Assembly (NCBI GenBank): GCA_025603075.1
Contig: MU626453.1
Span: forward strand, 1 to 36,367
Reading direction: 5' to 3'
DNA: 36,367 nucleotides
DNA from: Neoconidiobolus thromboides FSU 785
Lineage: Eukaryota; Fungi; Entomophthoromycota
Below the pieces are notes generated by a model. The model was not told the origin of the DNA and ran no database searches. It worked only from the letters and a program-made list of their open reading frames with translations. Shown piece by piece: positions 939 to 33,731 of the stretch (its first letter is position 1; the number at the start of each line of letters is the position of its first letter). The position numbers and the translations under genes were made by a program.

Positions 939-1323
939 AGGTTATGATGGTACATTTGTATTATTATTTATTATCAGACTCAAATAAAGAATTACCTATT
1001 TAAATCAAAAATTTTGTATAGGGAAAATAATTTTAGAATAACTTTATTAAGTTTTTTGACTATTGAAGTACTAACGAGGTGGGGATATTGGAATTGGTTT
1101 CATTTTTTATCTGATTTTTAAATCCTTGATATTTTGAAAGTTTTGGTTAAAATTATATAAATAAAAGTATCCAACACAATTTTAAACTATTTTATTATAA
1201 TTCATATTGTAAGTTAGCAGAATTTCTACTAGATCTGATAAAAATTCATATATTGATAAGGTTTTTAGTAGTATAATATATATATTGATATTAACCAAAG
1301 TTGTAGGATGTAAATAAATATAT

Positions 1324-1419
1324 GGGGATGTATTTTTGTGTTTAAGAATTTTACTACCAATTTTTCCGCTCAAATAGCGCATAAAAATGAATAAGTGATG
1401 AAGCCAAAAAAACACCACC
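1324..1419 (+). mobile_element. MITE-like element copy 1
   Basis: GGGGATGTATTTTTG...CAAAAAAACACCACC with conserved core CTCAAATAGCGC; flanked by ATAT at 1320-1323 and 1420-1423. Confidence 0.85.
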
Positions 1420-1798
1420 ATATACTTCTATAAAACATCATTGAGGAATAACTATTATTACTGCTTTATAGCCACATTGTAGATTTACTGTCAAATAAAC
1501 AAATTATTTTAATGTTGTAATTACGTTATTAATAATAGTAAACTTCAGTGGTATTTTTTTCTCTTTTTTGCTTTATTATAAAATTCCATAAATTTTAAGC
1601 TATTATAGATAGTTGTTAAAATTAACGTAAATAAATTATAATACTTATGTAATATATTTCTGCTTAGTATATTAAAATTTTAAAAAATTCCATTTTGAAG
1701 TTTAGTTATAAAAATTTGAACTTCATTTTTAATAAAAAATAAAGTCAAACTACATTTATATATTATATATCTATTAAACATTTGATAATAGAAGGATT

Positions 1799-1890
1799 AT
1801 AAGCCCTTTAAATTCAACTAATCATACATTAAGGACTTACAAATTTAAAACTTGATTTAGATTAATTTTGAAATCCCTCCTCAGCTTGGA
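1799..1890 (+). repeat. Second dispersed repeat, copy A
   Basis: Aligns with ~19101-19190; shared core AATYATACATTAAGGACTTA..AATTTAAAAYTTG. Ends approximate. Confidence 0.55.
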
Positions 1891-1991
1891 TATCTCTATA
1901 TGAGACCCAACTGTTTTCTGTATCACAAACTGATACTAAGTCTTTATTATGAGTAAATAATCTAAATACTTATTAACTATAAAAATTTTAA

Positions 1992-2062
1992 GCAATGTTG
2001 GTTTAGTGGTAAAATTGCCGCCTGCCACGCGGCAGCCCCGGGTTCGATTCCCGGACATTGCA
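1992..2062 (+). tRNA. tRNA-Gly (GCC), intronless
   Basis: Acceptor stem GCAATGT/ACATTGC, D arm GTTTAGTGGTAAAAT, anticodon stem GCCGC/GCGGC with loop CTGCCAC, T arm CCGGG-TTCGATT-CCCGG; T5 run at 2076-2080. Confidence 0.95.
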
Positions 2063-2125
2063 TACTACATTATTGTTTTTCCTCCTCACAATAGGAGTGG
2101 AAAACATGGTAAAATACTTCTATAC

Positions 2126-2225
2126 GGGGGATGTATTTTTGTGTTTAAGAATTTTACTAACAAGTTTTCCACTCAAATAGCGCTTAAAAGATGGAAAAAA
2201 TAATGAAACCGAAAAAAACACTCCC
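2126..2225 (+). mobile_element. MITE-like element copy 2
   Basis: Full-length match to the family; flanks are ATAC/GTAT (inverted rather than direct); 63 bp downstream of tRNA-Gly. Confidence 0.85.
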
Positions 2226-2530
2226 GTATCTTCACTAGTTAATATTGATTGGTAAAGTGAGATATCATTTTGTAAGTCGAGAGTTGTGATAATATTGTTA
2301 TAGTGGAATTAAAGTTTCTAGCTGGTATTAATCTCTTGTTTAGTTTAATTTTACTTTTAGTTATAATTAATAAATAACTTAACTTTCTTTGCACTGATTT
2401 ATTAAACTTAAAAATTAAAAATTTCATAATTTATTTAAAAAATTCAAAATCGATATTAATTCAAAAAATAACTCATTTGTTAAAAGAAAATTATATTTAT
2501 ATACTACCAACCAAAATTAAATACCCCCCT

Positions 2531-5500
2531 TCAAATCCTCTTACAATAACCTGACGGGAACCATCCCCTCTCTCTTGAAAATGCGTCTTCTCCATACCAC
2601 CATGGTGAACTTGAATTCTTGGTCACTTTAAAAACATTCAAATCGATTCCCGGGACCAATGAAAGCTCTGTAGGCCCACTAGCTTTATATGGAAACAATG
2701 CTTTACAATGGAACAGTATAGTTCTTTCCTTTTTACTACTTATAGTTGTAGTGGTTTGCATGGTTGAAATTGAGTCCCTAGTCTTATGTGATCTCAGATG
2801 ATTGCTATCCTCGGCATGGGATTTAGGAGATGAATAGCTATTCACCGGGGAATGTGCCTCTGTAGAAGTTTCTGAGTAAATACTGGAGCCGTCTTGTGCT
2901 TTATTAATGTTCAATCCCAGTGTATTTTTAACACTATGTTCCTTAAGTAGAAAAGAGGCGGTTGATTCCATTGAGTTTGTTTTTGAGTGATTGATCGATG
3001 ATATTTGAGAGTGGGATTTAAAAGCTTCTTGTTTAAAGCTTAAATTCATATTGAAAGATTGTAATGGATCAACTAGATTACTAGTGCTATGGGAAGTCCT
3101 TATTTCATTCTTAAGTATCTCATCATAAGCGCTGCCTTCGTTATTATTATCGGTGTTGCCCTGTGCAAAATTGCTAATTAAAGACTCTTTAATTCTCTGC
3201 ATATCATCTGAGGTTAGCCCGGGCACCATTAGACTATCCATACTTAGCTCATTTGCCTTTCTAGACTCTGGGTTCAATAAGCTGCTAGCAAAATACGAGT
3301 TTTCACCTGGATGTGTTAGAAAAGGTGAGCTATTATTCCTATCTATCATAGGGGCTAAAGAGATAATTAATATAAAAATAAACTAAAATTATAACAAATT
3401 GTACCTGCTGATGATTTGGCATCACTCTTTGACCTATAAAAATGGGCCGGAATAGCCGATCTTTTCTTCATAATGTCAGTTGTTAAGCTATTATTTTTAT
3501 TGTGTGAGATCATGTTATTCGAGTCAATATCACTGCCTTCTGAAACTGATCTTTGGATATGAACTAAAACATAAATAAGCATAATACATAATAAATAAAT
3601 ATTCCCTTACCAGAATTAAAAATAGCAGAGGGACCAATAATAGATAGGGCAGCTTTACTGAAAGGGTCTTGCTCACCAAATCCCTTAATTTTATCAAAGT
3701 AATCTGCTTTTAAATCAGAACTTATGTTATGGTTTTTATCAAATAAAATCAACAAACGATTTAAATCTTGATAAGGTCGTGAATAAACTTCTTTTTGAAT
3801 CGTAGCAAACTGTCCAACCAATAGTAAGAAGATTTTACTACCACTTTGTAAGAACTGGGGCAATTCATCTATCAATTGCTGATTGATTAACTCATACCCT
3901 TCAGATAATTCTGCCAAGCTTTTGTTGTTCTATTTAAATAATGTGTTAAATATTTATTATTTAGTTTATATAATGTTATAATCTACCTCTTTGTCTTTGT
4001 TCTTTAAATGCTGGTCGTAATCATACAATTTTCGGTCTCTTTTCTTCATAATAATCGTTGGTTTGTTAAACAACTGACACAATTGTTGTACTCTTTCATA
4101 CAAAACAGTATTGACTTCATGATCCAAATAGGTTACAGTATCTTTAGTGAGATGTTCAATCGCTTTAAGAAATTCAGATACATATAATTGCAAAGGGGCA
4201 GGACTCGAATTAGCTACAATTTGTGATGAGGTATAAGCAGATAAATAAGCTTTAGCTAATATCTCCTGCTGAGTCAATACATTTTCGAAGTTCAATGTCC
4301 AATTTTGCACCTCAATCCAAAACTCACGTATACTATTTTCTAATTCCAATACCTTAAGGGCCAAAGTGTCATATGTCTTATCTGTTGTTTTTAGCTTGAT
4401 TCCAGCAATTTTTCTCAACTGTTGCGCACCCCGAATAAGCTTTTTATTAAATCCTTGGCGTATGTCTACAGCCTCTGATTTTTTCGGTTTGTGACCGATA
4501 ATCTTTTCAATTGCTTCCTTCCTCTTTTTGAACTCATTATAGTTATCGGCAGAGTTCTGAATCAGTCTAGAAGCATCCAACAAGTTTTGATAGTCCGGAT
4601 GATCCTTAGGAGTCACTGACAACAATTCCTAATAACGGGATTGTATTTGTTATTAATAAATCATAATAAAAAAATTTTAATTACCCTTAATAACAATGGA
4701 TACTTTAAAAATCTTTGAATGGGCTTGATTAATAGCGAATTAATATCCCATGCTTTAGATTTGCTTTTCAGTTCTTCATCACATTTCTATTCAAGATAAA
4801 TAAAATAAAAAACAAAAGACAAAAAAATTACTTCTAATAGTGCTACAGTAGAAGGAAAACGTTGAGCCATATTTTGGAGGTAAGCCATAGATGCTTCGTG
4901 ATGTTTAAAATATTGTGAATATACTTCTTGAAGGTTGCTATGCTAAATATTTCCATTATATTTCTACTAAAAGTAAAATAAAATAAACCTACTTCTTCAA
5001 TGATAACTTTACCAATCATTAGCGTAGCAATCTCTTGAGAATTGATTTTAAAAAGCTGTATTAACTTTCTAGAATAGTCAATGATGTCTTCCACGTTAAT
5101 AAATATGATATGAATATCCTTAACTGAAAATTCGTTTGGATTTTCTTTAGCTGCTTTCATATAAATATCCCTTAATAAAATCAAGTCCTCCCTATAGCTG
5201 ACCTCAGTACTGATAAGCTCCTCCACCACATGTATCAACTTCGATTCACTATTTGATTTACTAATCATTTCTTCTGAATGCGATCTTAAACTCTCTAAAC
5301 TTTCAAACCGCTGTGGTAAAGAAAGACTAGGTGATGCTAATGGTGGGCCGTTGGTTCCAATTGAATCATTTGTTCTTGAAGAATAGTTCCTATTATGATT
5401 AATGTTCGGCCTGTTCTTATCGTTCCTACTCATCGCTGACATTGTAAACATTTCTGGATCTGATAATTTGCGATTTAAGCTTTTACTCTTTAACTTGATT

Positions 5501-8500
5501 GTTGGTGGTACTGATCCAGCTCCTTTGTTTTCGATTAATTTATGAGGTCTATTGACCCTTAAATTGGACTTAGGAGGCGGCGCCGGTGTAAATACACTGC
5601 TTGGTTTTCTGTGATGGCTAAAGAGAGGTTCAGATCGGCAACTAGCTTCGGATGGACTGACACTTATATCTTCTTTTTTCTCCGGCAAAGAAAAAGCAGA
5701 AAGCGTAGTACTTATCCTAGGCTGCTTTGTGTTGTTTGGTGGAAATTGATAATCTTCTTTCCTTGCTGTACTCTGTACTCTTTGTTTCGGACTTTCATGT
5801 TGTTTACTATTCAGTACAAGGTCTTCAATTGAATTATTGTCCGAAGGGTATGGTATATGTGCTTCTAAATTGGGTGAACTATCTGTAGATTCTGAGCCCA
5901 TCATGGTACTATAAATTGTAAGTGCTGAAGAATACCGATGATTTTCAAAGTCTTTTTCATCCAAATATTTGATACATTGTAATACGGCGCTAAGCGAAGG
6001 TTCTAAAGATTTAGGATTAAGATATGAACTTCTAGCTTCTACATCATTCTCTTTAATTACTGATTCTACCTTAGGATTGTAACTTTGACTTGGGCTGTTC
6101 CTATTATTATTTTCAATAATATTGTTAAGTTTAAAATCGGCAACGTTTATATTTTCGCTAGAATCATGCTTTTCAATTTGTTGACCATTTTGTTGATCTT
6201 TACTTTCTTTTTCATTATGGATAGTTTCAAATCCTTTTGACGGACTAACGCATCTTGGTCTGTTTGGACTTTTAGCTCGGGTTTGATAGCTAGGATTTTT
6301 GTTTCTACCTTCAACAAATGAATTATTAACTTGAGAAGGCTTTAACGAATCGCTCCTAGTTGAAAGTAGACTCTGACCTAGACTTTCAGTTGTTCTTATT
6401 TTTTGAGGACTCTTGCTAATTTTCATATTATTATATTCAGCTAAGATAGAATTGAAGTCTAGATCTGTAGCTTCTTTTATAATAGCTGGACCCTCCTTTT
6501 TACTATCAACCAGGCCAATTTCTTGATGAATTTTACTTGCAGTTAATAAATTACGGTCTATAACTAATTCATCTTTGCTATAAGTAGCACCATGTCGCCT
6601 TAGACCAACAGGTGGCAATTTTACAGCTTCATTACTCTTATTTGTGTTTTTAACTAATTTTACTTCACTGACCTCATTTGTTGTATTTTTAATTGAGTTT
6701 GAAATCATATTTAATTCAGGATTACTCATATTAACCAATATGCCTGAGGGATTAACGATATTAGAACTATCTTCAGTTGTGAGTGATAAGTTTGCATTTG
6801 TTTTTTCAATACATGTGAGGATGTTGACTTCGCTTTCAACTTTAGCTACTTCGTTACAATCCTCACTTTGGTTTGCCTTTTGTTTCATTGTATGATTATT
6901 TATGGTATCTTCTTTTATTTTAGTTTCACTCTTTAAAGTAGTAGGCTCCCAAGTTTTAACTTTGCCAACTGTTGTTTCTTTAGTCAGGTCTTTTTGATCA
7001 AGATGATTTTTTGTTTCATTGGTGCTACCATTCAATGGGCTTATTTTATTTACATTATTACTACCTTTTGAAATTGAGCTTGTCTTATTCATTTGATCTT
7101 GCAGCTCAGGCTCCCATCCCTTCACTGTTCCAATTAATGATTTTAACGCACTCTCATTAATGTTATCGGACGAGTTATTTTCCAAAAACTTATTTCTGTT
7201 GACTTTGACTTTACTTTCCAAAGTTAAGTCAGATTTTGAATGTTTACCATCGTAATTTATCTTTGAACTTAAAGTATTATTATCAGGTGACCAAGGTCTA
7301 GCTTTAAAATTGACAGATTCTTTATTCGGTTGTGATTTTGACATTGTGCTTGTTTTAATATTAATTTCTGATCCAAACATTTTTATCCTTTCAGCAATAA
7401 TCCCCTTTTTGTCTCCCTCCTTCATACTATACCCCATTCGCTTTCGATCAGAGCTAGCTACATTCTCAAGATTGAACTTATTTACTTTATTTTCATTCAA
7501 TGGGTCTTTAGAACTTCCTTGAGATTTATCAACTGTTCCTATTTCCTTTTCGTTCACCAAACGACCTATGTTTTCTCTGATAATATTGTCAGAACTATTT
7601 CTACCATCCACTTTTTGCAGCCTTATTTCTTTTCCTGATTCCAAATTTAAATCCTCTTGATTTACCTCTGACCTATACCTCAAATCTTTGTGACGGGATG
7701 CACTTTCAAAATCTAAGATGGACTCTCCTTTCAAATAAGGTTTAAAATCATCCTCAGTAGGCTGAGAAAAACTAAAAGATTCAAAACCTTGGCTTGCATC
7801 ATAAGGTCTACTATCTTTAAAATTTTTGGATACCGTTTCATCCAAAATTGGTGATTTTATCTCTTCTTCTTCAACGTCTACCTGCGCTGATGTGGGCGAT
7901 TCAACTCTTTTTAATGCTGGGTTAATTAAAGCTTCTTTACTCTTTTTATTCACAAGATTATTAGAATTAGCTTCTGTTATATCCTTTGATTTTATCAATG
8001 TAGTTGGATCAACTTCCTCTTTTTCAATCAAAGGAGTGGTATTACTCCTTATATCACATTTTTCCACTTTGGTATCTAAACTAATCTTTATTTGCTCCTT
8101 TAGATGCGCAGCATCATTAAAACTCAAGCTCCTCCTGGGGCTATCCTCAACTACACTATTAATTAATTTGAAATCTTGATTGCTTGGAGACACTAACTGC
8201 TGTCTATTAATTGATCTATTTATAGGTGATACCACTGTTTCTCTTGATTTCTTATCATCCTTTAAACCCTTAGACTTTAATAAAGTTTCCAAAACTGTTG
8301 GTTTTGCCTTAAATTCTTCATCGGATTCATACCTCGTTGTATTACTATGTGCTTCACTAGTATATTCCATTGAGTTCGGCTCCACCTCATAAGTATCAAG
8401 GATGACAGAGGATGTAGGCGACAACAAATCAGTAATTGTTCGCTTAGCACACTCTTTTGAAGCCTGTACTTCACTATCCGTTTGATCAACCCACAACTCA

Positions 8501-9263
8501 TTGTTGAGCTCATATGAACTGATGATCTCCATTTCTAACTCGTTAGTATCGAAACTTTCATGAACTATTTTGTATACGTTTGGTGACCTTGGTTTATCGA
8601 TTGAAAAATAAGGGCTCTTTTTTTTAATGGCAGAGGCAGGCGTTTTTAGTTCGGAATAATAGCTTATCACATCTAACTCATTATCGTTATCTTTAATTTC
8701 CACTCTTAGTGGCTTTCCTTTCCGCTTTTCAGCCAACGGAGAAGATTTGCTTGCAATTTCATTAAATAACTCTTTTTTACCACCTAAAGTAATATTCTAG
8801 ATATATTTAATATCATAATTTTTTAGTAAAAATGTTAGTTTACCCTCCAGTCAGGGCTGGCCTTTTTAGATGATTCGGCACTTGTTATCAAAGGGGTTGG
8901 TTTTGTAGTGATCGTTTCAAACAGTTGTTTTGTCTTTAAAAAATTGGCAGTTCGATTGGGTCGTATCAATGATTTTCGAACAATCGGCGACCGCATACTT
9001 TTCAACTTTGGATTTAAAAAGTCTGTGTTTAACTTGTTCTTTGTTGGACTAATTTCACTTTTTCCTTGAACTTCACTCATATTATTATCTGTTATCGTGT
9101 CCTTGTTAAAACTCTTGCTTTTATTTAATATTCTTGTCGTTGAAGTTGTATTACTTTGAGAAATTCTTTGTTTAAAATAGCCTGGACTGGCTGGTGCAAC
9201 ATGGTTAAACTTTAACTTACCAGTTCGATCTTTTTCACTATCAGTTATTGCAAAATCCTTCAT
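2531..9263 (-). CDS. RhoGEF (DH) + BAR + C-terminal SH3 protein (Tuba/DNMBP- or Gef1-like architecture), ~2126 aa; exons 9263-8844, 8796-4993, 4942-4832, 4786-4685, 4628-3987, 3929-3611, 3563-3405, 3354-2531
   Basis: Seven GT-AG introns of 45-57 nt join the ORF-track pieces in frame (6381 nt). DH motifs VVEELISTEVSY and LLIKPIQRFLKYPLLLRELL; BAR-like YELINQQLIDELPQF; SH3 ALFPY...ELSL...WWYG...GWFPSGYC. The start codon is the least certain part. Confidence 0.85.
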
Positions 9264-10279: not shown

Positions 10280-10374
10280 GGGGATGTATTTTTTGTTTAA
10301 GAATTTTACTACCAACTTTTCCGCTCAAATAGTGCTTAAGATAGAAAAATAATAAAGCCAAAAAAAATACCCCC
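10280..10374 (+). mobile_element. MITE-like element copy 3
   Basis: GGGGATGTATTTTTTG...CAAAAAAAATACCCCC; ATAT at 10276-10279 and 10375-10378. Confidence 0.85.
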
Positions 10375-12263: not shown

Positions 12264-12357
12264 GGGGTTGTTTTTTAGTTTCATTATTTTTCCATTTTTT
12301 AAGCGCTATTTGAGTGCAAAGATTGTAGTAAATTCTTAAACACAAAAACACATCCCC
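12264..12357 (-). mobile_element. MITE-like element copy 4
   Basis: Reverse-complement full-length copy; AAAT at 12260-12263 and 12358-12361. Confidence 0.85.
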
Positions 12358-12423: not shown

Positions 12424-12526
12424 AGATGATGTAATAATATATTTTTGTATTTAAGAGTTTTACTAACAATCTTTCCCCTCAAATAGTGATTAAAAGATGA
12501 AAAAGCTGATAAAGCTAAAAAAACCC
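12424..12526 (+). mobile_element. MITE-like element copy 5 (5' end eroded)
   Basis: Core TTTAAGAGTTTTACTAACAATCTTTCCCCTCAAATAGTGATTAAAAGATG recognisable; no clean target duplication. Confidence 0.7.
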
Positions 12527-12953
12527 ATGTGTGTAACTAGAGACTTATTACTGGGTTACTAGATAGATGTTTTTTTAATAATAGCATAAATTTTCAAAAG
12601 TTAAAATAAATAAAATAGAACTATTTTGAAACTTTAAAAAACATATGGTTTAAATAAATTGTTTAAATTTGTATTTATTTACACCAATTTTAGCTAAATA
12701 TATTCCCAGATATGTTAAAATTAGATACGATTAGTAGAGATGGCAATGTAAGTAAGTTTAGTGATAAATATAGTTTACTCCATTCTACTATTTTCACAGT
12801 AAAAAAGTTTGTCCAAATCCTCTTTTTTATTTGCAACTTTTATAAACTACAATCACTGCAAAATTACTGGATAAACCTACTAGGGTGTTAATTCAAGAAC
12901 AACGATTTTATATAAATTAAAATTAATTTAATGATTATATTCAAACAATCTTG

Positions 12954-14711
12954 ATGAGCAAAAAAAGAACAATAGATGTACAAAAATCTTATAGACACTA
13001 TGCGGCTGAAAAACTGGATGAGATTGAACTGAAAATAAGCCATATATTTGAACAGATAAGTGAAAGAACGATAAGTGAAAAAGAATTAATCTTATTGTCA
13101 AATTACATAAAGTGGATTGGGTTTATTACAAAAAAATACCACTGCATATTAGAAAAGAGAGAAAAAATAGTGTATAGGAAAAATGGAAAAGAAAAATATA
13201 AACAAATTGAAAATACGTTCTTTGATGGCGTTAATAAAGGGACAGAAGTTTTTATCAAACTAAATCAACCATTCTTAGAACACCTTTACTTATCTTTTGG
13301 AGCCAATAAAAATTTATTAAACGAGTTAAACCTATCAGTGGTCATTATGTGCGGCCTAAAACCTTCTCAGCTATTTCATTGCTTCGCTAATGTTTACTGT
13401 AGTAAAATGGATCCCAACTCATTATGGTTATCAAGAGAAAACTTACTATATATACTTCGGAGTAAGAAAAACAATCTTTTAAAAGTGATGCTGTTTCAAG
13501 CGCTTATTAAACTAATTAAGTTCGAATCTGAGGAAACTGCTAACTTATTTCGATTTGAGCATATTAATTTTGAGATAGCTTTGAAAGAATGCTTTGATTA
13601 CCCCTGTATTGAAAACATAACTGCAATAGTAATGTACATTAGCGAACTATATTTTTCTAGGCAACTAACGACAGCACATATATACATACAATCCTTAATC
13701 CATATCAAAGATGCTATTATGGAATTGGAATACCGTACCCCATACCTATCAAAAGAAATGCTGGAATGGAAAGAGAGATTATGGGAAATGATTGAATTTT
13801 ATCATCTTTTTTTAGGGAACCCAGAGAAGACTTCGTTACTTGGCAGGGAAATAGAATTCAATCATGTTAAATCAAAAATCATATGTGCTCCTACTTTGCC
13901 CAGGTTATCTAATGAGCAAGTTTTATTAATTTCGTCAAAAGATGCTTTATTAAGCTTTGAATCCAAAGAAGATATATTAAGAAGGGAAATCAATAGTGAG
14001 CATTATTATTATTCATTAGCTACATGGGTTGAAATGGAAACACTAAGGGTAACTAGGAAACAAGTTTTGTGTTTAAAGTCAGGGAATAAAATCAAATATG
14101 ATCTTAAATTTCATGATAACATGGTGAAACTTACTGAATTGATGGAGCAAATAAACATTATTATTAAAAACACACCATCCGAGTATAAAAAATATGCTTT
14201 AATTACGAAAAAACAGGCTTATTATATGCTAAATCATGGTAAGAAAATATCAGATAGATGTTATTCCTTTGGGTCTTACGCCTATAGTATCATTATTGAA
14301 TGCAGGCTACTTATTATGGATCCTTTGTCTTGGAATATTACCCAACCTCATAAGCTTACATCTCTTTATTCCTGGGATATTGCCCTTCTTGCCGCAAATG
14401 AAGTTTGGGATTATTTGGACAGAGCAATAGAAATGAATTTCAAAACAAAAGATGTTGTTTATCCTAGAATGAACAATTGTATATGCTTCCGTGCACTTAT
14501 CAATTTTTCACTTAATGTATTAGCTAATGATGTTCCTTTAGAAACAAAATGGGTGTTCTATAAAAGATTGAACGAGCTCTTGCATTGGTTGAAGTATTGC
14601 ACTACATCCGAGTATGGATTCCCCGATTCTTCAACCTTTTTGAATTTCATTGTAAATAGTATTCCATTATACAATTTTTCAAATCAATTCTCATTTTCAG
14701 ACTATTTATAA
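12954..14711 (+). CDS. Hypothetical intronless protein (~585 aa), weakly resembling a fungal transcription-factor middle homology region; no Zn cluster seen
   Basis: 1.76-kb open frame in very AT-rich DNA; first ATG at 12954. Segment CFDYPCIENITAIVMYISELYF...AHIYIQSLI resembles Fungal_trans helices (weak, by eye). Confidence 0.7.
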   Translation: MSKKRTIDVQKSYRHYAAEKLDEIELKISHIFEQISERTISEKELILLSNYIKWIGFITKKYHCILEKREKIVYRKNGKEKYKQIENTFFDGVNKGTEVFIKLNQPFLEHLYLSFGANKNLLNELNLSVVIMCGLKPSQLFHCFANVYCSKMDPNSLWLSRENLLYILRSKKNNLLKVMLFQALIKLIKFESEETANLFRFEHINFEIALKECFDYPCIENITAIVMYISELYFSRQLTTAHIYIQSLIHIKDAIMELEYRTPYLSKEMLEWKERLWEMIEFYHLFLGNPEKTSLLGREIEFNHVKSKIICAPTLPRLSNEQVLLISSKDALLSFESKEDILRREINSEHYYYSLATWVEMETLRVTRKQVLCLKSGNKIKYDLKFHDNMVKLTELMEQINIIIKNTPSEYKKYALITKKQAYYMLNHGKKISDRCYSFGSYAYSIIIECRLLIMDPLSWNITQPHKLTSLYSWDIALLAANEVWDYLDRAIEMNFKTKDVVYPRMNNCICFRALINFSLNVLANDVPLETKWVFYKRLNELLHWLKYCTTSEYGFPDSSTFLNFIVNSIPLYNFSNQFSFSDYL

Positions 14712-15426: not shown

Positions 15427-16679
15427 TTATGCTTTGGGAGAAGGCCTATGAAACAAATATTAATAAAAAACATAATGATTTTATTACTATATTACCTGTA
15501 AACACCAACAACTAAGGCATGATCACGCTCATATGGTTCAAGAGTAAGTTGTTCTTGTGGTTTGATCTTTTCTTGTTGCATTTTTTTAACTTCACTTGCA
15601 AATACTTTAGCAGCATCAACAGTAGAATCAATACAATTAGCCTAAGAATATAAATATAATGATTTTAAACATATTGAACTAAATACCTTAATAGAGATGA
15701 CAATGTGACCTTCGTTCTTTAAGAAATGATGGGCATTAAGAGCAATAATACGAGCTTGATCAGGTTGGGCAACATCAGCAAATACTACATCAACCATACC
15801 GACTAACATACGATATTTATGAGGGTGACGGGCATCTTCAATGATAGGGATAACATTTGTACGTTTTTTGGCGACATTGATAAGATCACGTCCGGAACGG
15901 TGGGAGAATTCAACAGCATATACAACACCTTCTGGACCAACGATATCAGCAACATGGGAAACAGTAGTACCAGAAGAACCACCTAAGTATAAAACTTTCT
16001 TTCCTGGTGCAATGTGGATATTATCGATACCACCTAAAATACCAGCAGCTAATTTTGAACGGAAAGGATTCCATACACGATACTCAGTTTTAGTACCATC
16101 TGCTGCCTAAAATAGTTAGTTTCAAATACATTCTATTATCTAAGCAAACTTACTTCAACTGAAATACGTTTTTCACCATAGGTACTTTCGCCAGGAACAA
16201 GATTTTTAGTAACTAAGAGATCTTCTTTTCCTCTAGCAACAAAAACACCTAATCTTGTTAACATTTTATTACCATACTTACAAATAATAGTTTACCTTCA
16301 TGACGATGGGGCTCTACAATAACTTTAGCCCCGCCTCTAGCTCCAGCACCTCCTCCACGGCCTCCTCTGCCGCCACGGCCTCCTCTATCTCCTCCTCTTC
16401 CACGAGGAGCTCCACGGCCCCCTCCACGGCCTCCACCAAAGCTTCCTCCACGGCCTCCTCCTCTACCTCCACCAAAACCGCCACGGCCTCCTCCTCTGCC
16501 ACCACGGTCTCCACCAAAACCACCACGGCCTCCTCCGCGGCCTCCTCCTCTGCCACCACGGTCTCCACCAAAGCCGCCACGGCCTCCTCCTCTACCTCCT
16601 CCTCCTCTGCCACCACGATCACCTTTTCAAATTAATAATATTCGAATAAAAATAATAAATGAAACATACCGAAACCCAT
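15427..16679 (-). CDS. NOP1: Fibrillarin (rRNA 2'-O-methyltransferase), 338 aa; exons 16679-16670, 16622-16296, 16248-16154, 16106-15687, 15641-15496, 15445-15427
   Basis: N-terminal RGG/GAR domain, then [81 protein letters not shown]. Five introns of 45-50 nt, 1017 nt in frame. Confidence 0.97.
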
Positions 16680-17628: not shown

Positions 17629-17725
17629 GGGGCTGTATTTTTGTGTTTAAGAATTTTACTAACAATCTTTCTACTCAAATAGCGCTCAAAAAATAGAAAT
17701 CAATGAAATCAAAAAAAACATCCCC
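17629..17725 (+). mobile_element. MITE-like element copy 6
   Basis: Full length; ATTT at 17625-17628 and 17726-17729. Confidence 0.85.
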
Positions 17726-17883: not shown

Positions 17884-17979
17884 GGAACTGTGTTTTTGTG
17901 TTTAAGAATTTTACTAACAAATTTTCCGTTCAAATAGCACTTAAAATGGAGAAAGTAATGAAATCAAAAAAACATCCCC
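17884..17979 (+). mobile_element. MITE-like element copy 7
   Basis: Full length, left TIR slightly diverged; ATAT at 17880-17883 and 17980-17983. Confidence 0.85.
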
Positions 17980-18660: not shown

Positions 18661-18758
18661 GGGGATGTATTCTTGTGTTTAATAATTTTACTAACAAATT
18701 TTCTACTCAAATAGCACTTAAAAGTAGAAAAAATAATGAAGTCAAAAAAAACACTCTC
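18661..18758 (+). mobile_element. MITE-like element copy 8
   Basis: Full length; AATT at 18657-18660 and 18759-18762. Confidence 0.85.
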
Positions 18759-19190: not shown

Positions 19191-19360
19191 ATTCCCACTT
19201 ATTGTTATTATTTCTAGTTTAGTAATTTTAAAATTTAGATTACAAGAATCAAACGATTTAATATAGTTCTAAGTTATTAGTTTGGATATGGAAATGCAGT
19301 ATATTATAATTTATATATTAACATAGTAGATATTCTGAGTATGATATTTATAAAAATTTT

Positions 19361-19442
19361 ATTTAAGAATTTTGCTAATAGCCTTTTCACTCAAATAGCG
19401 CTTAAAAAATGGAAAAGTGATGAAACCAAAAAAAAGGTTCTT
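19361..19442 (+). mobile_element. MITE-like element copy 9 (5' end eroded)
   Basis: Core ATTTAAGAATTTTGCTAATAGCCTTTTCACTCAAATAGCGCTTAAAAAATGGAAAAGTGATGAAACC; abuts copy 10. Confidence 0.75.
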
Positions 19443-19448
19443 ATATAT

Positions 19449-19545
19449 GAGAGTGTTTTTTTTAGTTTCATCACTTTTCTATCTTTTAAGTGCTGTTTAA
19501 GTGAAAAGATTGTTAGTAAATTCTTAAATCAAAAAGTACATCCCC
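19449..19545 (-). mobile_element. MITE-like element copy 10
   Basis: Reverse-complement full-length copy; ATAT at 19445-19448 and 19546-19549. Confidence 0.85.
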
Positions 19546-23502: not shown

Positions 23503-24162
23503 GATATCATCGATCTTTACTTTCCAAAACAAGAGAAATATAAAGTTGGTTTTATTATCTATGAGCACTTTACTATGTTGGATTTAGTAGGCCCAGCTGA
23601 AATTATAGGTGATCATCCAGATGTATTTGAGACTGTCACTATTGGTTTAGATGGCGATAGTTTGGTAAACTCATGGCATAATAGTTTGATTTATCATACA
23701 AAACTAAGTATCAAAGAAGCTAAGAAGCAACAGTTTGATCTAATAGTAACACCAGGAGGTGTAGAAGGAACTAATGCAATGATCGATAATAAAGAATTTA
23801 TTCAAGATTTCACTGAATTATATAACAACACCAAAGTAGTATTTACAGTTTGTACTGGTGCTTTAATTTTAGCCAAAACTGGATTATTAAATGGGTTTAA
23901 AGCAACTACTAATAAACAGGTGTTTTTCAAGAAAACTCCAGATTATCTTAAAGTAGATTGGGTCTATCATGCACGTTGAGTTCATCGTAAAAAGTATATT
24001 ACTTCAAGTGGTATTACTGCTGGTATGGATGCTGCACTTTATATTCTTACTTTAGTTAAAGGCAAAAAAGAAGCAGAAGAATTTGCTAATGTGTTGGAAT
24101 ATGTTGCTAATTTTGATCCAGATAAAGACCCTTTTGCTAAAAACTGCAATCAATCAAAATAA
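23503..24162 (+). pseudogene. Second DJ-1/PfpI paralog, probable pseudogene
   Basis: Frame matches gene 213-938 from DIIDLYFPK through MLDLVGP, VCTG and ATTNK. In-frame TGA at 23977-23979 replaces the Trp of RWIH; the frame then continues (KYITSSGITAGMDAA) to TAA 24160-24162. In-frame TAA at 23485-23487 and no ATG or signal peptide upstream of the homologous N-terminus. Confidence 0.8.
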
Positions 24163-24255
24163 AATAGTAAATGAAATATCTATCAAAAAATTAATTAAAA
24201 AGTTAAAATACACTTGAAAAAACTATTTACTTACATAGAATAATTGCATCTTTAT

Positions 24256-25442
24256 TTAATCTTTTAAGCAAATTTTATTCGCTTTGAGTTGAATGTAGAT
24301 GTTACAAGCTTGAAATACTAAGTTATCTTGATGCATCAATACAGTAGAATTGATAACGTTATTTACTACTTCATATGGGAATGTATTTCTGTGTTTAAGA
24401 ATTTTACTAATAATTTTTCCACTCAAATAGCGCTTAAAAGATGGAAAAGTAATGAAGCCAAAACCCCCCCATATTTTAACAATCTCGCTCCATACTTTAT
24501 ATTGTAACCCTTATTTAAGTAATTCATTACCTTTTTGTTCCAATTAAATGGAATATTATTGTTATCTATTACCTAAAGCAATTTAAGCTATTAAATAAAA
24601 TATTAAATAAAATATACAAAACACAGTCTTTGACCTTTTTAATAAAATAAAATTTATATTCTTATTTATTTTCTAAATCTTTTCGTTCTTTTCATAGTTT
24701 TATAGCTTCTTTGACAACCTCCTACTGGGCCAAGTTACTTGTGATAACAAATATTGTGTCCTTACAGTCAATCATTTTATCCTAAAACAAACATCAGATA
24801 ACAAATCAAGGTTTGTGTAATCTATAGTTACCTTTCAATTAGTGACTCTTCTTCTTCAAACAAGTGTAATAAAGTAGTTAAGTTTCACTATGAGCTTTTT
24901 CGATTTCACCCAAGATAATGATGGTATTCAAAACTAAAACAGATGCTAATAACAAACAATTGATAATTAAAACAGCCTTAACTATTCTTCAGTTTCTCAC
25001 AAAATAAACTCCTATTGTCATAACCAACATTAACCCAGGGGGGCTCCAATAAATCTAGAATTTTCGTGTTTACTTTGATATTCAGACATATCTACTCAAG
25101 TCCATATTCACCACCATGGATGTAATAAGTTAATTTTTTTGCCAATCTAGTTTTTTCTATTAAAATATCGGATATTTTAAAGTTGTTTTTTTATACTGTA
25201 CATATGATACACTATTCACGCCTAAAGGCACAAGAAATAAAAACACCAAGGATCTTTCTGGACCTTGCCATCCTTACTGTTGGTTAGTTAATTCAGTGCT
25301 TGTTATATTATACATTATATAAATACCATTTTGTTCTAATTGTAGCAGATCCAATCATATCAATTACCGCCTTTTGACCAATAATCTTACCTTTAATATA
25401 AGATTTAAAAGATTTTTCTAGTTTCAGCCAATGAATAGTCCT
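24256..25442 (-). pseudogene. Decayed CLPB/Skd3-type AAA+ ATPase (single ClpB-like NBD), with intron remnants, interrupted by MITE copy 11
   Basis: Minus-strand fragments in the expected order: KIIGQ; GWQGPERSLVFLFL; KTRLAKKLTYYIHG; VDMSEYQSKHENSRFIGAP; VGYD; EIEKAH; LLHLFEE; IDCKDTIFVITSNLAQ; GYNIKYGARLLK(Y)EVVNNVIN. Two 50-nt GT-AG introns are recognisable; many stops and frameshifts; the segment expected between ~24670 and ~24570 appears deleted. Confidence 0.85.
24377..24470 (+). mobile_element. MITE-like element copy 11, inserted in the CLPB/Skd3-like relic
   Basis: ATAT at 24373-24376 and 24471-24474; excision restores the host reading frame. Confidence 0.9.
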
Positions 25443-25446
25443 ATAT

Positions 25447-25544
25447 ACCAAGATGTTTTTTTGATTCCATTACTTTTCCATCTTTTAAGCGCTATTTGAG
25501 TGGAAAAATTCTTAATAAATTCTTAAACAAAAAAATACATCCTC
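25447..25544 (-). mobile_element. MITE-like element copy 12
   Basis: Reverse-complement copy, one TIR eroded; ATAT at 25545-25548 and 25443-25446. Confidence 0.8.
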
Positions 25545-25833: not shown

Positions 25834-25921
25834 ATAGTCATTAAATTCAAAACATCGTTATTTACCTAACAGAAAACTTACATTAATATTTTGATTTTAA
25901 GTCATCTTTAAAAAATTAAAT

Positions 25922-26019
25922 GGGAGTATTTTTTTGGCTTCATTACTTTTTCCGTCTTTTAAGTACTATTTGAGTAGAAAGATTGTCAGTAAAATTCTTA
26001 AACACAAAAATACATCCCC
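25922..26019 (-). mobile_element. MITE-like element copy 13
   Basis: Reverse-complement full-length copy; AAAT at 25918-25921 and 26020-26023; 42 bp downstream of tRNA-Gly. Confidence 0.85.
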
Positions 26020-26061
26020 AAATACTATTTAAAAAGTTTCAACTTCAATTCAAAATAGAAT

Positions 26062-26132
26062 TGCAATGTCCGGGAATCGAACCCGGGGCTGCCGCGTGGC
26101 AGGCGGCAATTTTACCACTAAACCAACATTGC
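26062..26132 (-). tRNA. tRNA-Gly (GCC), identical to 1992-2062
   Basis: Exact reverse complement of the first copy over 71 nt. Confidence 0.95.
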
Positions 26133-26805
26133 TTAATTTAAACATCAGAAATTATATTATAAAATTTGAAAACTTAACTAAAGACAGACTTACCATCGTG
26201 CTAGAAAGCGATGGTGATATAAATGAACAAATTCTTTAGCGGAGTTTTTACAAAAGACAATAAGAGGTACAAGTAGTTAAAACTAAATATATTTTTTAAA
26301 ATTATTTTAGATTGAGCGGTAGTCAGTTTTTGCTTTCAAGCTGTATCAATTCGAATGGATTTAAGAAAAGCTTAAAGTTAATTTTATTTAATCAAGCTTA
26401 AATGAGTTTGAGTTAAAAAGCCCAATAAAAACTAGATGTGTCTTATAGTTTAGTATATAATTGTTTTATATTAAAAACATGTGTATTGTATTGAATCAGC
26501 TTGATGTTTATATTTATATTTATATTTATATTAAGTGTATAACGCTTTTTTAAGTATTTATTTCAGTTCTAAACATTTTTAAACAAAATTCAAGCTTTAT
26601 TTTATTTATTAATCGAAATTAGCTTTAAACATGAACTCAATTTTGATTACTTTACCATTAAACTCCAGTGCTTAAAGTTAGAAAAATTAGCCAAACATTG
26701 AAAATTCAACTGATTGGTTTAAAAAAAAGGAGTATGTAAAGCAAGCGTAAGTGGCACAAGTGAAAAAAAAGAGAACTATTTTTTTTAATTATAAAAAAAG
26801 CAAAG

Positions 26806-28727
26806 ATGAGTACCATTGATCAATGTTGTATTTACCTCAATATATTAGAACAATGTGAAATGATTCGCATTATTGATAGTGAAAAAGTACATGAAAACCA
26901 TTCTTCTTATATCGTTTATATCATTCAATTTTTAGTAAGTTTTACAATTGATTTTTTAGCTATTGGGTAGATTTAACTATATTGATAGGATCGTCAAGTT
27001 CGTAGAAGATACTCTGAGTTCGAATCTTTTCAGTTACATTTATCCAAGTTACATCCCGAGATTTTAATTCCTCCGATCCCTAATAAGCACACTTTAGGTA
27101 ATCAATGTGTTTAATTAGTTTATTAGGTATTAACAAAATAACTCAGCCCAATATGCTACCAAACAAAATCGAGCTAAAGATGATGTGATGATGATTGAAA
27201 AGCGTAAACGTATGTTACAAAGCTTTTTAAATCGATTACTCAGCCATCCTTTTTTGGTGAAAGAACACTTGTTTCATCGATTTTTAGATAAAGACTCTAA
27301 CTGGGTAAGATAACTATTTTTTTACATACAAAAGCTCAAAAACTAGAATGAAACTTATATTAATGCAACAATTATATAGAATGAAGTAGTTAATACACCA
27401 ATAATACCACATTCCAATCGAAGTTCAATAAACATTCAGGTAAATGGGGAGACTATTGAGAATACCAATAACATCAATAATACTAAAATAGCAAGTGTTA
27501 AATCTAATGGAGAATCCCATTTTTCAAATGCGGAGAATTTTACTTTACAAGTACAAAGCGTTTTAACTAATCAATTATTTAAAGCTGAAAAAGGATTAAA
27601 TAGAAAACTTAGTGGTAAATTAGTTATTGATAATTATAAACAATTTATTGATGATTTTAATTAGAATGCTCCAAAGAGTTATCAGAGTTGGGGGCTTTAT
27701 ATAATGGATTTAGTTTAACAGAAAATGAAAAGATAGGCCAAGCTTTAGAAAAAGTGGGTCAAGCAGTGGATATAAGTTATATGTCTATGGTAGAATTATT
27801 TCAATTAATGGATATTAAAGTATCAGAACCATTAGAAGAATATATTAAATATAGTGAAACATGCCATAAAGTATTAAAGTACAGACAAAGTAAACAGAAA
27901 GAGTTGGAGAAATTAACACAAATATTAAGTAAAAAGAAGCAATTAATCCGACAATTACAAGATGGTGAATTAGAAAGTAAACGTTTAGAAGCAGCTTTAC
28001 AAAGGGAAATTGAAGCTAGAGATCCTTACTCAGATGATGACTCAATTTATAATGAAGATGAGCTAAAAAATCATCCTAATTTGCCAATTAAAAATAGGTC
28101 TAGATCAAATTCTTATCTTTCAAATCATTCACTTAATATTAATAATATTAATAATAATTCCAATAATCATAACATTAATCCAGTTATTCCTGAAAATAGT
28201 GTAGTTGATAATAATACTGATGAAACTAATAATAATAGTAATCGTAATAGTGGTATAATAGACGAGAATACAACTAAAGCTCCTAGTGCAAATGGAGGAG
28301 CTAATATATTAAATTTATTAAGTTATACATTCCATGGGCTAATTGATGTAGATCCAGAAGCTAGTAGAAGAAATAGTATAAGTAAAAATAAAGAGCAAAT
28401 ATTAGTATTAGAAGAACAAATTAACAAAAACACAATGGAATTAGCAGAACTTGATAATAATTTACAAAATGATCTTAACCGATTTCAATATCAAAAAATG
28501 GTGGATTTCCATACTGTAATGTTAGATTTAGCTAACATTCATGTAAATTGGTGTAAGGATGTAAGTTATTATATTAATAAATATATGTACTATTGAATAT
28601 TAAATATTAATTTAAATTATTATTATTATAGAATTTAGATGCATGGCAAGAAGCTCATGATAAAGCAATAGAAATCCCAGGGAATAGGAAAGTTATTATG
28701 TATAATTGTATTGAACCAAAGGAATAA
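26806..28727 (+). CDS. PX-BAR sorting nexin, Snx41/Atg20-like, 540 aa; exons 26806-26934, 26989-27097, 27147-27304, 27380-27614, 27665-28560, 28632-28727
   Basis: PX motifs VRRRYSEFESF, IPPIPNKH, IEKRKRMLQSFLNRLLSHP; BAR region ELSELGALYNGFSLTE ... NDLNRFQ...NLDAWQE. Five GT-AG introns, 1623 nt in frame. Snx41 versus Atg20 not resolved. Confidence 0.9.
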
Positions 28728-29316
28728 GCTATTATTTTTTAATTATTCTATCCAATGTTATTATTTTTAATTACTAAATTTATGTTTTAACATGATTTTC
28801 TTTTAAATTTTGATTTTTTTACTGTTATTATATTCAAGCGGCAATATATCGATATTTGAAATATATATTTGGTTTAAAATTTTATTTAAAATTTTATTGA
28901 TCATAGTTTTTATTAAGCCAAAGAATTAAAATTGATTTACGAAATATTAGTAAACAAATGACTTTATTTTAATATCATTTAGTTTATTAAAGTATTTTTA
29001 AACCCTTTCTGGTTAAGAAATACTTATTATGTATAGTCTGCTTAGCTTAATTACCTATAAGTATAAGATTCATATATTCAGTGCAATATTTCAGAAACAA
29101 GTTCCTATGAAATGAATTAGAATCAAAATTAATTTTAAACATATTTTTATTAAACAAATAAATTAGAAATTTAATAAAAGGACTTAAACCTTGATAATAT
29201 AACTATAATATATATTAATAACTAAAATAGAATATTAAATAAATTCAAAGATAAGTATCTAGAAGTTAAACTATATTTGTAATATATATTCAAATAATAG
29301 AGTTAAAATATTATAG

Positions 29317-30784
29317 TTACTCCGATGCTAAATCATCTAATTGAATATCAAGGTTTGGAATTCGATTGGAAGCCACTCTTAATACTTGCATTCTCATTCT
29401 ATCAAAATGATCTTGATTAAGAATTATGCTTTTTAAAGTATCCAAACAATTTTTAGGTGATATTTCATGACGATTGAATTTTTCTATAACTATAAATAAA
29501 AGTTAATAAATTAATATTACTAATATCAATATTATTAAAATAATTTCTTAATGTTTATTATTATTATCCTTACCATCTTTAAATATATTGAATTCTGGAG
29601 TATCTAATGTAGCAACAATTTCACCATAAACTTCTTCCATAGTAGTACTAAATTCTATATCTTTAGTATCTTCCCCTCCTTCAGTTTCTAAATCATTAGT
29701 ATTTGTATACGTTTTTTTAAAAAATATTGAACTAGGATCTAATAAATTAATTAAATACTTTTATATTTTGATTCTTTCTTTTGTATCTACCTGGATTAAA
29801 TTCACTCTCATCCATATTTAAAGACGGTGAAGTAGGCTAAATATACTTTTAAATCTAGATTTTAATAAAATAGAAATAAAATTTACGTTTTTAGCTACTC
29901 TCGTAGCCGAATTTGAATTAGATATCATATCAATATCAAATTTATTGTTGATTTTGTGATTGTATTTGTTCTAATTGAAAAATACAATTATAAATTAATT
30001 AAAAATATTAGAAATATTAAAAACAATATAGCTTACTGTACTATTATATTGATGTTTAGAAGAAGTTGGTGAAAACAAATTTCTTTTTGGTATAATTTTT
30101 TCTTCTTCAATAGCTAAACTTTGTTCAATAAACTCTTCATTAATAGGTATTGGTCCAGTGCCACTTAAATTAATAAGTTTCTATAAATTTATATGAATTT
30201 TGTTCACTTTTAAATATTTCGATTTAATCTTATATCCTATAATTACCTTCTTAAAACGATCCAATTCAGCAGTCTAATAAAATAAAGGTAATATTATCAG
30301 TTGAATTTAGCATAACAAACAATAATAAACTTACATATCTTCTTAGCTGATTATATTTTTCAACCAATTGTTTTTGATCCCTTAAAACATCGTTATGTTT
30401 AAATTCTAAATCTTGATATTTTTTATCTTTTAAATTAATATTTAATTGTAATTTTTCAACACTATTCTCTAATTCGGCTATTTTTCTTTCTTGATTAACG
30501 GAATATATTTTCATCCTTTGAATCACCCCTTCCATTTCATGTACTTTTTCCTTATAACTTTCTTGAATCGTTTTTAGTGCATTGTTGATCTAAATTATTA
30601 TTAAAAAATTCTTTGATACTGAGGTTAAGCTGAAATTTACCTTTCTATCATGATGACTATCACTATTATAAGCAAGTATATTGCTACTAGCTCTACTACC
30701 ATTCACTTCATTTCCTCGAACTTCACTGTTATCACTTCTTCTCCTTAAACTATCTTTTACTTGGGGTAGCCTTGATACCGACAT
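29317..30784 (-). CDS. Coiled-coil protein with small C-terminal helical domain, 345 aa; exons 30784-30641, 30589-30335, 30273-30247, 30180-30037, 29970-29887, 29836-29791, 29738-29574, 29489-29317
   Basis: Seven GT-AG introns join in frame (1038 nt). Coiled coil ending AELDRFKK; C-terminal EVYGEIVATLDTPEFNIFKDVIEKFNRHEIS. Confidence 0.75.
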
Positions 30785-30994
30785 TGGAGATTTTATTAAA
30801 ACAATTTAATTCCTTAATTTAATCCTTGATTTTGCTTATTGGTTCTTGAGTTTCTCCCTTATATTTCTTAGATGCAAAAATAGTTGCTTAATTTGGTTTT
30901 AGTTCTTTGCATTGGAATTTAGTTAATAAGCTCAATATTTGAATTTTATAAGGTTTTAATTTAATTCGTTAAAGGGAAAATTAAAATCGCTCAA

Positions 30995-31067
30995 GCTCCG
31001 TTAGCTCAGTTGGCAGAGCGTGGTGCTAATAACGCTAAGGTCATAGGTTCAAGCCCTATACGGAGCA
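30995..31067 (+). tRNA. tRNA-Ile (AAT)
   Basis: Acceptor GCTCCGT/ACGGAGC, D arm GCTC-AGTTGGCA-GAGC, anticodon loop CTAATAA, T arm ATAGG-TTCAAGC-CCTAT; T run shortly downstream. Confidence 0.95.
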
Positions 31068-31673
31068 ATTACCATTTTTTATGGCAAGGTTTTTTTTGTC
31101 TTTTAGTTTAACTAATGATTAAATTTTGACTTAAAAGGTGAACAAAATACTGAAATATATATTATCAGTTTAATTATATTGAATTTATAAGTTTGAAAAT
31201 TATTAAAAACCTATTTAAATATAAAAACATTTTAAAAAAATGTACAGCTATTTGGTTTGAAGTAAATGAGATTTTTGAAAGTTGCTTAATTAAGATTTAA
31301 ATCAATTCAAATGTTCTAATAATAGGTTACTATAAATAATTTAGGTTAGAAATAAAAAAACTTGATAAAGTAATATTTTTTATATTTTCTTGTTTATTAA
31401 TGCTAAAATTTAATTTTATAAAATTTTGATATTGTAAATCTAGATTTTTTAATTTTTTTCAAACTTTTTTTTAAAATTATATATTAGTATTATTAAAAAT
31501 ATAACATGTTTTTTTGTTTTTATTTGCATTTGATCATTTTGATTTATTCATTGACTTATTACTTTATTTTCAATTTTGAAAGTGCTGCAATATAATTTAT
31601 ATTAATCTCAGTAGCTTTAAAAACTAGAATTACCTTTTTACTTTTTATTTGTAATTATGAGAATTTATTATAT

Positions 31674-31771
31674 TGAGATGTTTTTTTTGATTTCATCACT
31701 TTTTCCATTTTTTAAGCACTGTTAAGCAGAAAGATTGTTAGTAGAATTTTTAAACAAAAGAACATGTTCAC
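31674..31771 (-). mobile_element. MITE-like element copy 14
   Basis: Reverse-complement, more diverged copy; ATAT at 31670-31673 and 31772-31775. Confidence 0.8.
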
Positions 31772-31948
31772 ATATATTTGTTAAAATAAAACTTGTTTAT
31801 AAAAGTTTACTTATAAAAAACTGGTTGCTTCATTTTATTTTATTTTACTTTATCTTATCTATATAAAATTAATATTCACTAATATTTTTATTATTTTAAA
31901 ACTTTACTAGTTATTTTATAAATAGTGTTCATTTAGTTTTTGGTTTAG

Positions 31949-31949
<1 letters not shown>

Positions 31950-32036
<87 letters not shown>
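31950..32036. repeat. (TTA)29 perfect microsatellite
   Basis: 87 bp of uninterrupted TTA units. Confidence 0.95.
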
Positions 32037-32037
<1 letters not shown>

Positions 32038-33149
32038 TAATTTTTTCTTATGCTTATTTAATTTATTTTTAATTTTTTTGAAGCTAGTATCATTTTTATT
32101 AATAATATATTTGTAAATATACCCCCTTATAATTTCTTATTGCTGCTCTCATATTTTAAGTCTTTGTAGTTTAAGTTTTATTTTTCCTAATATTAGTAGC
32201 TTTTTAAAATTTACTAAATAACTCATTATGTTTCTTAAATTTTCTATAAATTTAATAAACCTTTTTTAAAAACTGGAATTAAATTGATAAAATTTTTACT
32301 TGTTAGTTTACTAATTACACTAGATTTAAAAATAAATTAAGCATTTGGCTTTTTAATTTTGTTTTTAGTTAATTTATTTAAAAATATTTTTTAAGTAATC
32401 TTGAATAGTTTTTTATTCTCAATACTTCTATTATTAACTATGCTTTTTTTTTCACCTACTTTTTTTTCTTGTTACATATTATTAAACTGACAAATTACCA
32501 TTATTAAATACATTTAAAAAAAGCATTGCTATTAATTGCTTTTAAAAAAATGCTGCATTCAAATGCTTTTGTTGATTTTTTTCTAGCCAAAATACAAACA
32601 TAACACTATTAAAATTTACTTAAAAAGAAGGGCTAATATACAACTCCGGAATAAGCTGGTTTTGTTATTTATTAAGCATATGAATACTTGAAAATTATTG
32701 AATAGTAATCAATTATTATTATTAATATTTGTTTTTTGTCTTTTCTTTTAGCAACTTAATGAGGCCACTTTTGATACATATTTTATATTTAATAAAGTTA
32801 GTTATATACATTTCAACATCATTTTAATACTTGAACTACCACAATAACCATCAAACTGGTCAAACGATTGATTTATAATTTACGTTTTTGATTATGTGTT
32901 CTAATAAGATATTCTCTACAGGTTGAATAAATGTGATTCACTGTTCCAGGTTGATGCTAATATATCACAGTTAAAATATAAAGAAATAATTATATACTGC
33001 TTATGGTTAAAAGGTTTAAGATACAGTTGCTTTATCTAATTAACTTGACAAGAGTATGAAACCCTTGAAATAAAGGTAATCTATATATTTCAGCCTAGTT
33101 CGTAAATAAACAGGGTTATGATATCTTACGTTTTTAATAAAAATAATAT

Positions 33150-33244
33150 CTAGGCATGCCTTTTTTCAAAATTTTATTAAAAATTTTTCCACTCAAATAG
33201 CGCTTAAAAAATGGAAAAGTAATGGAATCAAAAAAAACATCACC
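33150..33244 (+). mobile_element. MITE-like element copy 15 (left part eroded)
   Basis: Right two-thirds matches the consensus; ATAT at 33245-33248 and possibly 33146-33149. Confidence 0.75.
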
Positions 33245-33731
33245 ATATATCTAACAGTAATGTAAACATTCCTTTATTTATAACGTACGTTTGGTGCCAC
33301 TTAAATATGCTGACTAAAATGAAACCATAGTACACATAAATATCATTAATTCTATAGAACAGTATTTAAATATATGTAGTTAAAAGAATAACTACCATTA
33401 CATCGATTAATTATTCAACTCATATTTTTATAATCGAAAGCAACTTAAACAGCTAAAATAGATACCAATAAGTACATCACAGTCATAAAACCGGGAGAAA
33501 ATAGTAATAAATTACAAAAATCCAATAAACGTCATTTTAAAAGTATAAAAAAAGGGTGTAAAAACAGATAATAAATTTATTATAAACTGAAAATTTCGGA
33601 ACAAGCGCCACCAAATCGACTTTGCATTGAAAACTATAAATAAACCTAAATTTATTTTATATCAATTCTGCTTTCAATTGAATAAACTTTTTCATTCTAT
33701 TATACACTTGGGCTTTTGCTTTTTTTTGATA

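Follow-up and report, generated by a model that had tools for sequence, protein, structure and literature searches.

Four-base A-W-W-T target duplications have been reported for two groups of the Sola superfamily of transposons. PMC3845634, citing Bao et al. 2009, calls the 4-bp AWWT duplication a hallmark of Sola1, and those who defined Sola give AWWT duplications, e.g. ATAT, AAAT and ATTT, for dictyostelid Sola2-type elements (PMC3627910). The latter, DFa-1/2/3 and PPa-1/4/5 (Bao and Jurka 2013, PMC3627910), reside in AT-rich genomes, are kilobases long, contain Fanzor or transposase genes, begin with GAATATT... or GTTAAAT..., have inverted ends of 12-21 bp and are accompanied by non-autonomous derivatives that lack a transposase. 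Insect Sola1_NA MITEs (miniature inverted-repeat transposable elements) from Bombyx mori and Rhodnius prolixus, the partner of which was identified as a Sola1 transposase, are non-coding and 250-700 bp long, duplicate 4 bp of the type AWWT or AWDT, have inverted ends of 28-36 bp that start with G (GGACCGTTTATTTTG...), and occur in tens to hundreds of copies (PMC3845634). In fungi, a 2017 survey of cut-and-paste transposons found Sola1 and Sola3 to be essentially confined to Rhizophagus, with single cases in Dikarya (PMC5751038), and a comparative genomics study that includes the insect-pathogenic fungus Neoconidiobolus thromboides (PMC11105155) puts its repeats at 13.5%, with no mention of Sola or MITEs. 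Here we analyse a family of MITEs found on the complete contig MU626453.1 (36,367 bp, hereafter the window; assembly GCA_025603075.1) of N. thromboides FSU 785, which we consider to be class II non-autonomous elements that are probably moved by a transposase of the Sola superfamily, either Sola1 or Sola2.

The window has a GC content of 17-34%, 13 annotated protein genes and three tRNA genes, namely a tRNA-Ile(AAT) of eukaryotic type and two tRNA-Gly(GCC). MITE copies were located by a search with the terminal motif, by repeat finding, by BLAST with the consensus given in a preliminary description of this DNA, and by MAFFT alignment. Ends and flanks were re-derived separately for every copy in the window. 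Additional contigs of the same assembly were reached via paralogous proteins, being L007 (4.9 kb), L008 (4.9 kb, MU626771.1) and L009 (2.0 kb), which brings the pooled DNA surveyed for the MITE to about 48 kb.

The terminal motif has 16 matches in the window, against 0.66 expected by chance. Repeat finding, BLAST and MAFFT all recovered the same 15 copies, ten on the plus and five on the minus strand, in accordance with the preliminary description, most coordinates of which also held; those of copies 10 (19449-19545) and 11 (24377-24470) and the end of copy 8 (18758) were corrected. The copies are 93-99 bp long and lack open reading frames (ORFs). They show 81-95% identity to the earlier consensus according to BLAST, and 71-94% to the 98-bp consensus of the MAFFT alignment, which is almost equal to it. 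The preliminary description placed no copy inside an intact gene and indeed all 15 lie outside the 13 gene models, which has a chance probability of about 4e-4 since these models make up 41% of the contig. Four further copies were found on L008 and one on L009, and none on the 4.9 kb of L007. The total of 20 copies in about 48 kb, roughly one per 2.4 kb, makes thousands of copies genome-wide plausible. With a density of one copy per 2-4 kb it would occupy about 4% of the contig and form a sizeable share of the 13.5% repeats of the species, although no published survey gives the family a name.

Perfect 4-bp duplications flank ten of the 15 window copies, exactly as tabulated before: ATAT at copies 1, 3, 7, 10, 11 and 14, ATTT at copies 4, 6 and 13, and AATT at copy 8, where the duplication of copy 14 needs slightly degenerate ends. 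Pairs of 4-mers at the spacing of the MITE are identical by chance in 1.04% of cases in the window, and ten out of 15 has a probability of about 4e-17. On L008 and L009 four of the five copies carry AWWT duplications as well (ATAT three times, AAAT once), two of the ATAT cases hinging on a 2-nt choice of the element end. Overall 14 of the 20 copies show a clean duplication and all 14 correspond to A-W-W-T, a pattern with a background of 7% in the window. ATAT is the preferred target, since it accounts for nine of the 14 duplications, against 20% of the AWWT sites in the window.

Palindromic flanks, ATAT and AATT, could just as well mean that the inverted ends are longer. The four non-palindromic cases are decisive in this respect: ATTT borders copies 4, 6 and 13 at either end, with unrelated outer flanks, and AAAT stands on both sides of one L009 copy. 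Longer inverted ends would produce ATTT at one border and AAAT at the opposite one, hence these are 4-bp direct duplications and not part of a longer inverted repeat. The base that adjoins the element is in every copy a T at the 5' side and an A at the 3' side, and the flanks vary from copy to copy, including those of the two copies beside tRNA-Gly genes.

Further evidence for insertion comes from copy 11, which lies within the coding sequence of a decayed gene for a CLPB/Skd3-type disaggregase (window 24256-25442, minus strand) with several frame breaks. In silico excision of 24377-24474, i.e. the 94-bp copy and one ATAT (98 bp), results in a single open frame of 72 codons, the translation of which, belonging to the C-terminal part of the gene, can be aligned gaplessly with human CLPB over the junction (YGARLLK-Y-EVVNNVIN versus YGARSIK-H-EVERRVVN, E 2e-7). 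The empty site is rebuilt in silico rather than observed; its gapless in-frame match shows that copy 11 entered a once continuous coding sequence at a single ATAT, adding its own length plus 4 bp. The non-palindromic direct repeats and this rebuilt site bear out the earlier proposal of a MITE that inserts with duplication of 4-bp A-W-W-T targets. Excision of copy 12 revealed no coding continuity and no empty site was found on the paralogue contigs L007, L008 and L009. In the alignment of paralogous promoters at copy 15 homology stops about 330 bp upstream of the ATG, and neither this alignment nor the inverted duplicate at the window's left end is informative.

The inverted ends of the MITE read GGGGATGT...ACATCCCC. 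Its terminal inverted repeats are about 14 bp long and match at 13 of 14 positions of the consensus (GGGGATGTaTTTTT versus the reverse complement of AAAAAaACATCCCC). The core is non-coding and weakly palindromic, with AGCGCT at the centre and an inner inverted pair TTTTCCA/TGGAAAA, and a comparison of the whole MITE with its reverse complement gives about 60-64% identity. Such a weak palindrome over the whole unit is usual for MITEs that were built from both ends of a longer element.

Several well-known sources of MITEs were rejected on the basis of the duplications, in line with the distinction drawn in the preliminary description. MITEs of piggyBac, Tc1/mariner (mimp-type) and PIF/Harbinger (Tourist-type) are also short and non-coding, with inverted ends and high copy numbers near genes, but they duplicate TTAA, TA and TWA, respectively, whereas all 14 clean duplications are 4-bp A-W-W-T here and the rebuilt site calls for removal of the element together with exactly 4 bp. 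Neither piggyBac nor Kolobok explains the data, as none of the 14 duplications is TTAA, though the window contains TTAA and ATTT equally often. Tc1/mariner/pogo was rejected because the repeats are 4 bp and include ATTT, AATT and AAAT, which do not contain TA, and the ends are not bounded by TA. A 3-bp duplication as made by PIF/Harbinger does not correspond to the 4 bp found.

The footprint does indicate Sola, albeit Sola in general rather than Sola1, since AWWT is reported for both Sola1 and Sola2. Resemblance to the dictyostelid Sola2-type elements consists of the AWWT duplications, an AT-rich host genome, the existence of non-autonomous forms without transposase and inverted ends of comparable length (12-21 bp there, about 14 bp here); the fungal MITE differs in being a non-coding unit of 96 bp that begins with GGGGATGT. 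With the insect Sola1_NA MITEs it shares the lack of coding sequence, 4-bp duplications of the same type and G-initial inverted ends, but at 96 bp with ends of about 14 bp it is much smaller, and its abundance is roughly one copy per 2.4 kb of the DNA surveyed. With the Sola elements of Rhizophagus irregularis (PMC5751038) it has a fungal host in common and, if the assignment holds, the superfamily.

From sequence we infer a Sola transposase as partner and cut-and-paste chemistry as most probable. The transposase that mobilises the MITEs in trans would have its gene in another part of the genome and is most probably a DDD enzyme from Sola1 or Sola2, within the Sola superfamily; it would bind the ends and excise the element. 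Insertion would take place at an A-W-W-T target, preferably ATAT, via a 4-bp staggered cut, and repair of the stagger would duplicate the four target bases.

A number of observations weigh against this scenario. No transposase is seen and the superfamily is assigned from the footprint. Copy 2, the best preserved one, has no direct duplication and is instead flanked symmetrically by ATAC..GTAT, which could be the result of two flank mutations or of an aberrant event. Five copies have decayed ends and are uninformative; copies 5, 9 and 15 have lost their 5' end. Finally, nothing in the window indicates recent or current mobility, as no two copies are more than 89% identical. As to the ends, the Repbase rule is an equal duplication length plus matching terminal positions 1-11 (PMC4455052); the published Sola ends compared (GGACCG..., GAATATT...) share the initial G with the MITE and are otherwise unlike it.

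The absence of a transposase from the window agrees with the preliminary description: no ORF longer than 142 aa is left without explanation, and the only large orphan ORF has 585 aa (12954-14711). The latter was considered as a transposase and rejected, since it resembles the Fungal_trans regulatory domain of Zn2Cys6-type factors (Atlas feature score 0.97). In the window we found neither a second element with the same ends nor a longer element bounded by MITE ends, and a 44-nt repeat at 1796 and 19097 does not extend.

A partner from outside Sola that also makes 4-bp AT-rich duplications, such as Ginger2, a Chapaev/CMC-type element, Academ or an undescribed superfamily, is in our opinion unlikely. 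Ginger elements have the ends TGT...ACA and CMC elements have CAC..., whereas the MITE has GGGG...CCCC, and all 14 clean duplications begin with A and end with T, none being TATA or TTAA. What speaks for such a partner is that the superfamily is deduced from the duplication alone, and that Ginger2 MITEs are reported to prefer 4-bp AT-rich targets with TATA favoured (PMC3845634). Ginger2 itself was rejected, since the length of the duplication fits but TATA is not among the duplications and the ends differ.

We are similarly hesitant about a narrower reading in which the partner is a Sola1 and not a Sola2 transposase, as the preliminary description had it when it took AWWT for a Sola1 preference. 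That link does exist in the literature, in the form of the hallmark stated in PMC3845634, and among the Sola groups it is Sola1 for which fungal records are scattered (PMC5751038), a source that also supports the earlier remark that Sola is rarely reported in fungi. However, an equal footprint is reported for the dictyostelid Sola2-type elements (PMC3627910), hence Sola1 is not singled out and we consider a specific Sola1 partner doubtful.

The state of the copies suggests considerable age. Pairwise identity among copies has a maximum of 89% and a mean of 75%. The copies are 5-32% diverged from the consensus, mostly by GC-to-AT transitions, from which we conclude that the family is old. At least three or four subfamilies can be told apart by variants that copies have in common, so that amplification took place in several waves. 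Counted over the copies of the window, L008 and L009, C>T and G>A substitutions amount to 16-19% per consensus G or C and A>G and T>C to 5-6%; the dominance of the former explains the erosion of the GGGG/CCCC ends. This bias fits an AT-rich genome, and the spectrum directly reflects either mutation pressure towards AT or a process that deaminates cytosines. Together with the AWWT sites it provides a handle on the mutation bias of a genome that has 25-30% GC in the window.

A literature search yielded no paper that describes this MITE family. As far as papers are concerned, with Repbase and Dfam outside the comparison, it appears to be undescribed in print. Elements of this kind, and the way they move, are textbook matter. 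Should the assignment to Sola hold, the family is a clear example of a swarm of MITEs derived from Sola in an entomophthoralean fungus. The practical value is modest; repeat masking and gene models of this genome would benefit from a curated consensus. Sampled 31-mers of copy 2 are present in four DNA runs with three organism labels and partly in RNA runs with two labels; they are absent from three more distant organism labels, which share a little of a 6-kb stretch. A metagenome scan with a 22-nt subterminal pattern gave three matches (22-33 nt), all attributable to chance.

Some copies have conspicuous positions. Two stand close downstream of tRNA-Gly(GCC) genes, copy 2 at 65 bp from the one at 1992-2062 (plus strand) and copy 13 at 43 bp from the other at 26062-26132 (minus strand), both in the same orientation relative to the tRNA gene. 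Their spacers and flanks are unrelated, which makes these insertions independent events. Estimated roughly and post hoc, the probability of two MITEs this close to tRNA-Gly genes is 0.002-0.006. Two others stand upstream of transcription-factor-like genes and have the orientation of the gene, with 425 bp between copy 5 and the ATG of the Fungal_trans-like gene (12954-14711) and 488 bp between copy 15 and the ATG of the Zn2Cys6 gene (33732-34514). That MITEs are drawn to, or kept at, positions downstream of tRNA-Gly genes and some 0.4-0.5 kb upstream of Zn2Cys6/Fungal_trans genes, in gene orientation, is nevertheless a proposal we regard as quite improbable. Were the placement non-random, it would point to a DNA transposon that targets Pol III genes or promoters, or to exaptation as a shared cis-regulatory module of one transcription-factor family.

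With respect to these surroundings it was also observed that a third, identical tRNA-Gly(GCC) on L009 (945-1015) has a MITE at about 800 bp downstream, that the Zn2Cys6 paralogue on L007 (71% identical) has no MITE within 2.9 kb upstream, and that copies 5 and 15, both upstream of transcription-factor-like genes, both have a decayed 5' end.

The same positions, 425-490 bp upstream of two transcription-factor-like genes in gene orientation and 43-65 bp downstream of two tRNA-Gly genes, together with the presence of 1-2 of seven sampled copy-2 words in RNA runs, would suit a dispersed functional motif, either a regulatory module or a structured RNA gene, whose spread is due to duplication or gene conversion rather than to transposition, but this is extremely improbable given that copy-specific 4-bp direct duplications and the empty site rebuilt in coding sequence mark transposition, that copies occur in both orientations and decay freely (5-32%) with a neutral-looking GC-to-AT bias, and that the MITE has no match in Rfam and no significant fold, single strands being no more stable than shuffled sequence (z -1.25 to +0.9).

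Table 1. Copies of the MITE in the window, with their length, state and flanks (5'/3').
Copy	Coordinates	Strand	Length	Flanks and remarks
1	1324..1419	+	96 bp	ATAT/ATAT, at 1320-1323 and 1420-1423
2	2127..2225	+	99 bp	TACG/GTAT, no direct duplication; 94% to consensus, closest
3	10280..10374	+	95 bp	ATAT/ATAT
4	12264..12357	-	94 bp	ATTT/ATTT in element orientation; non-palindromic direct repeat
5	12433..12529	+		Both ends decayed; duplication not recognisable
6	17629..17725	+	97 bp	ATTT/ATTT
7	17884..17979	+	96 bp	ATAT/ATAT
8	18661..18758	+	98 bp	AATT/AATT
9	19345..19442	+		5' end lost or decayed; 3' flank ATAT
10	19449..19545	-	97 bp	ATAT/ATAT
11	24377..24470	+	94 bp	ATAT/ATAT, at 24373-24376 and 24471-24474; inside decayed CLPB/Skd3 gene
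12	25452..25544	-		5' flank ATAT; 3' end decayed; imperfect duplication (GTAT or TATA)
13	25922..26019	-	98 bp	ATTT/ATTT
14	31674..31771	-		Probable ATAT/ATAT; decayed ends, 76% to consensus
15	33147..33244	+		5' end decayed; 3' flank ATAT

Copies 9 and 10 adjoin tail to tail, their 3' ends being separated by ATATAT alone. Copies 14 and 15 point away from each other and delimit a stretch of 1.57 kb (31674-33244) that has MITE 3' ends at its borders and ATAT on both outer sides; this could be a composite element or a coincidence.

Other features concern the ends of the contig and its gene content. L008 probably continues the contig leftward, since its positions 1-415 match window 1-415 in reverse complement with 100% identity. 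L008 also contains, at 4586-4881, a 296-bp copy of window 60-355 with 97% identity, as well as a DJ-1/PfpI paralogue. This arrangement reflects either inverted duplication around the DJ-1 genes or an artefact of the assembly. The DJ-1/PfpI family counts at least six paralogues (window 213-938 and 23575-23979; L007, L008 and L009), 61-69% identical to the intact window copy. That they are mostly located on very short contigs suggests a gene cluster that is repeated or hard to assemble. Window 16300-16650, within the minus-strand gene at 15427-16679, is a low-complexity coding region, with an imperfect tandem repeat of 9-12 nt periodicity and a strong skew of C over G.

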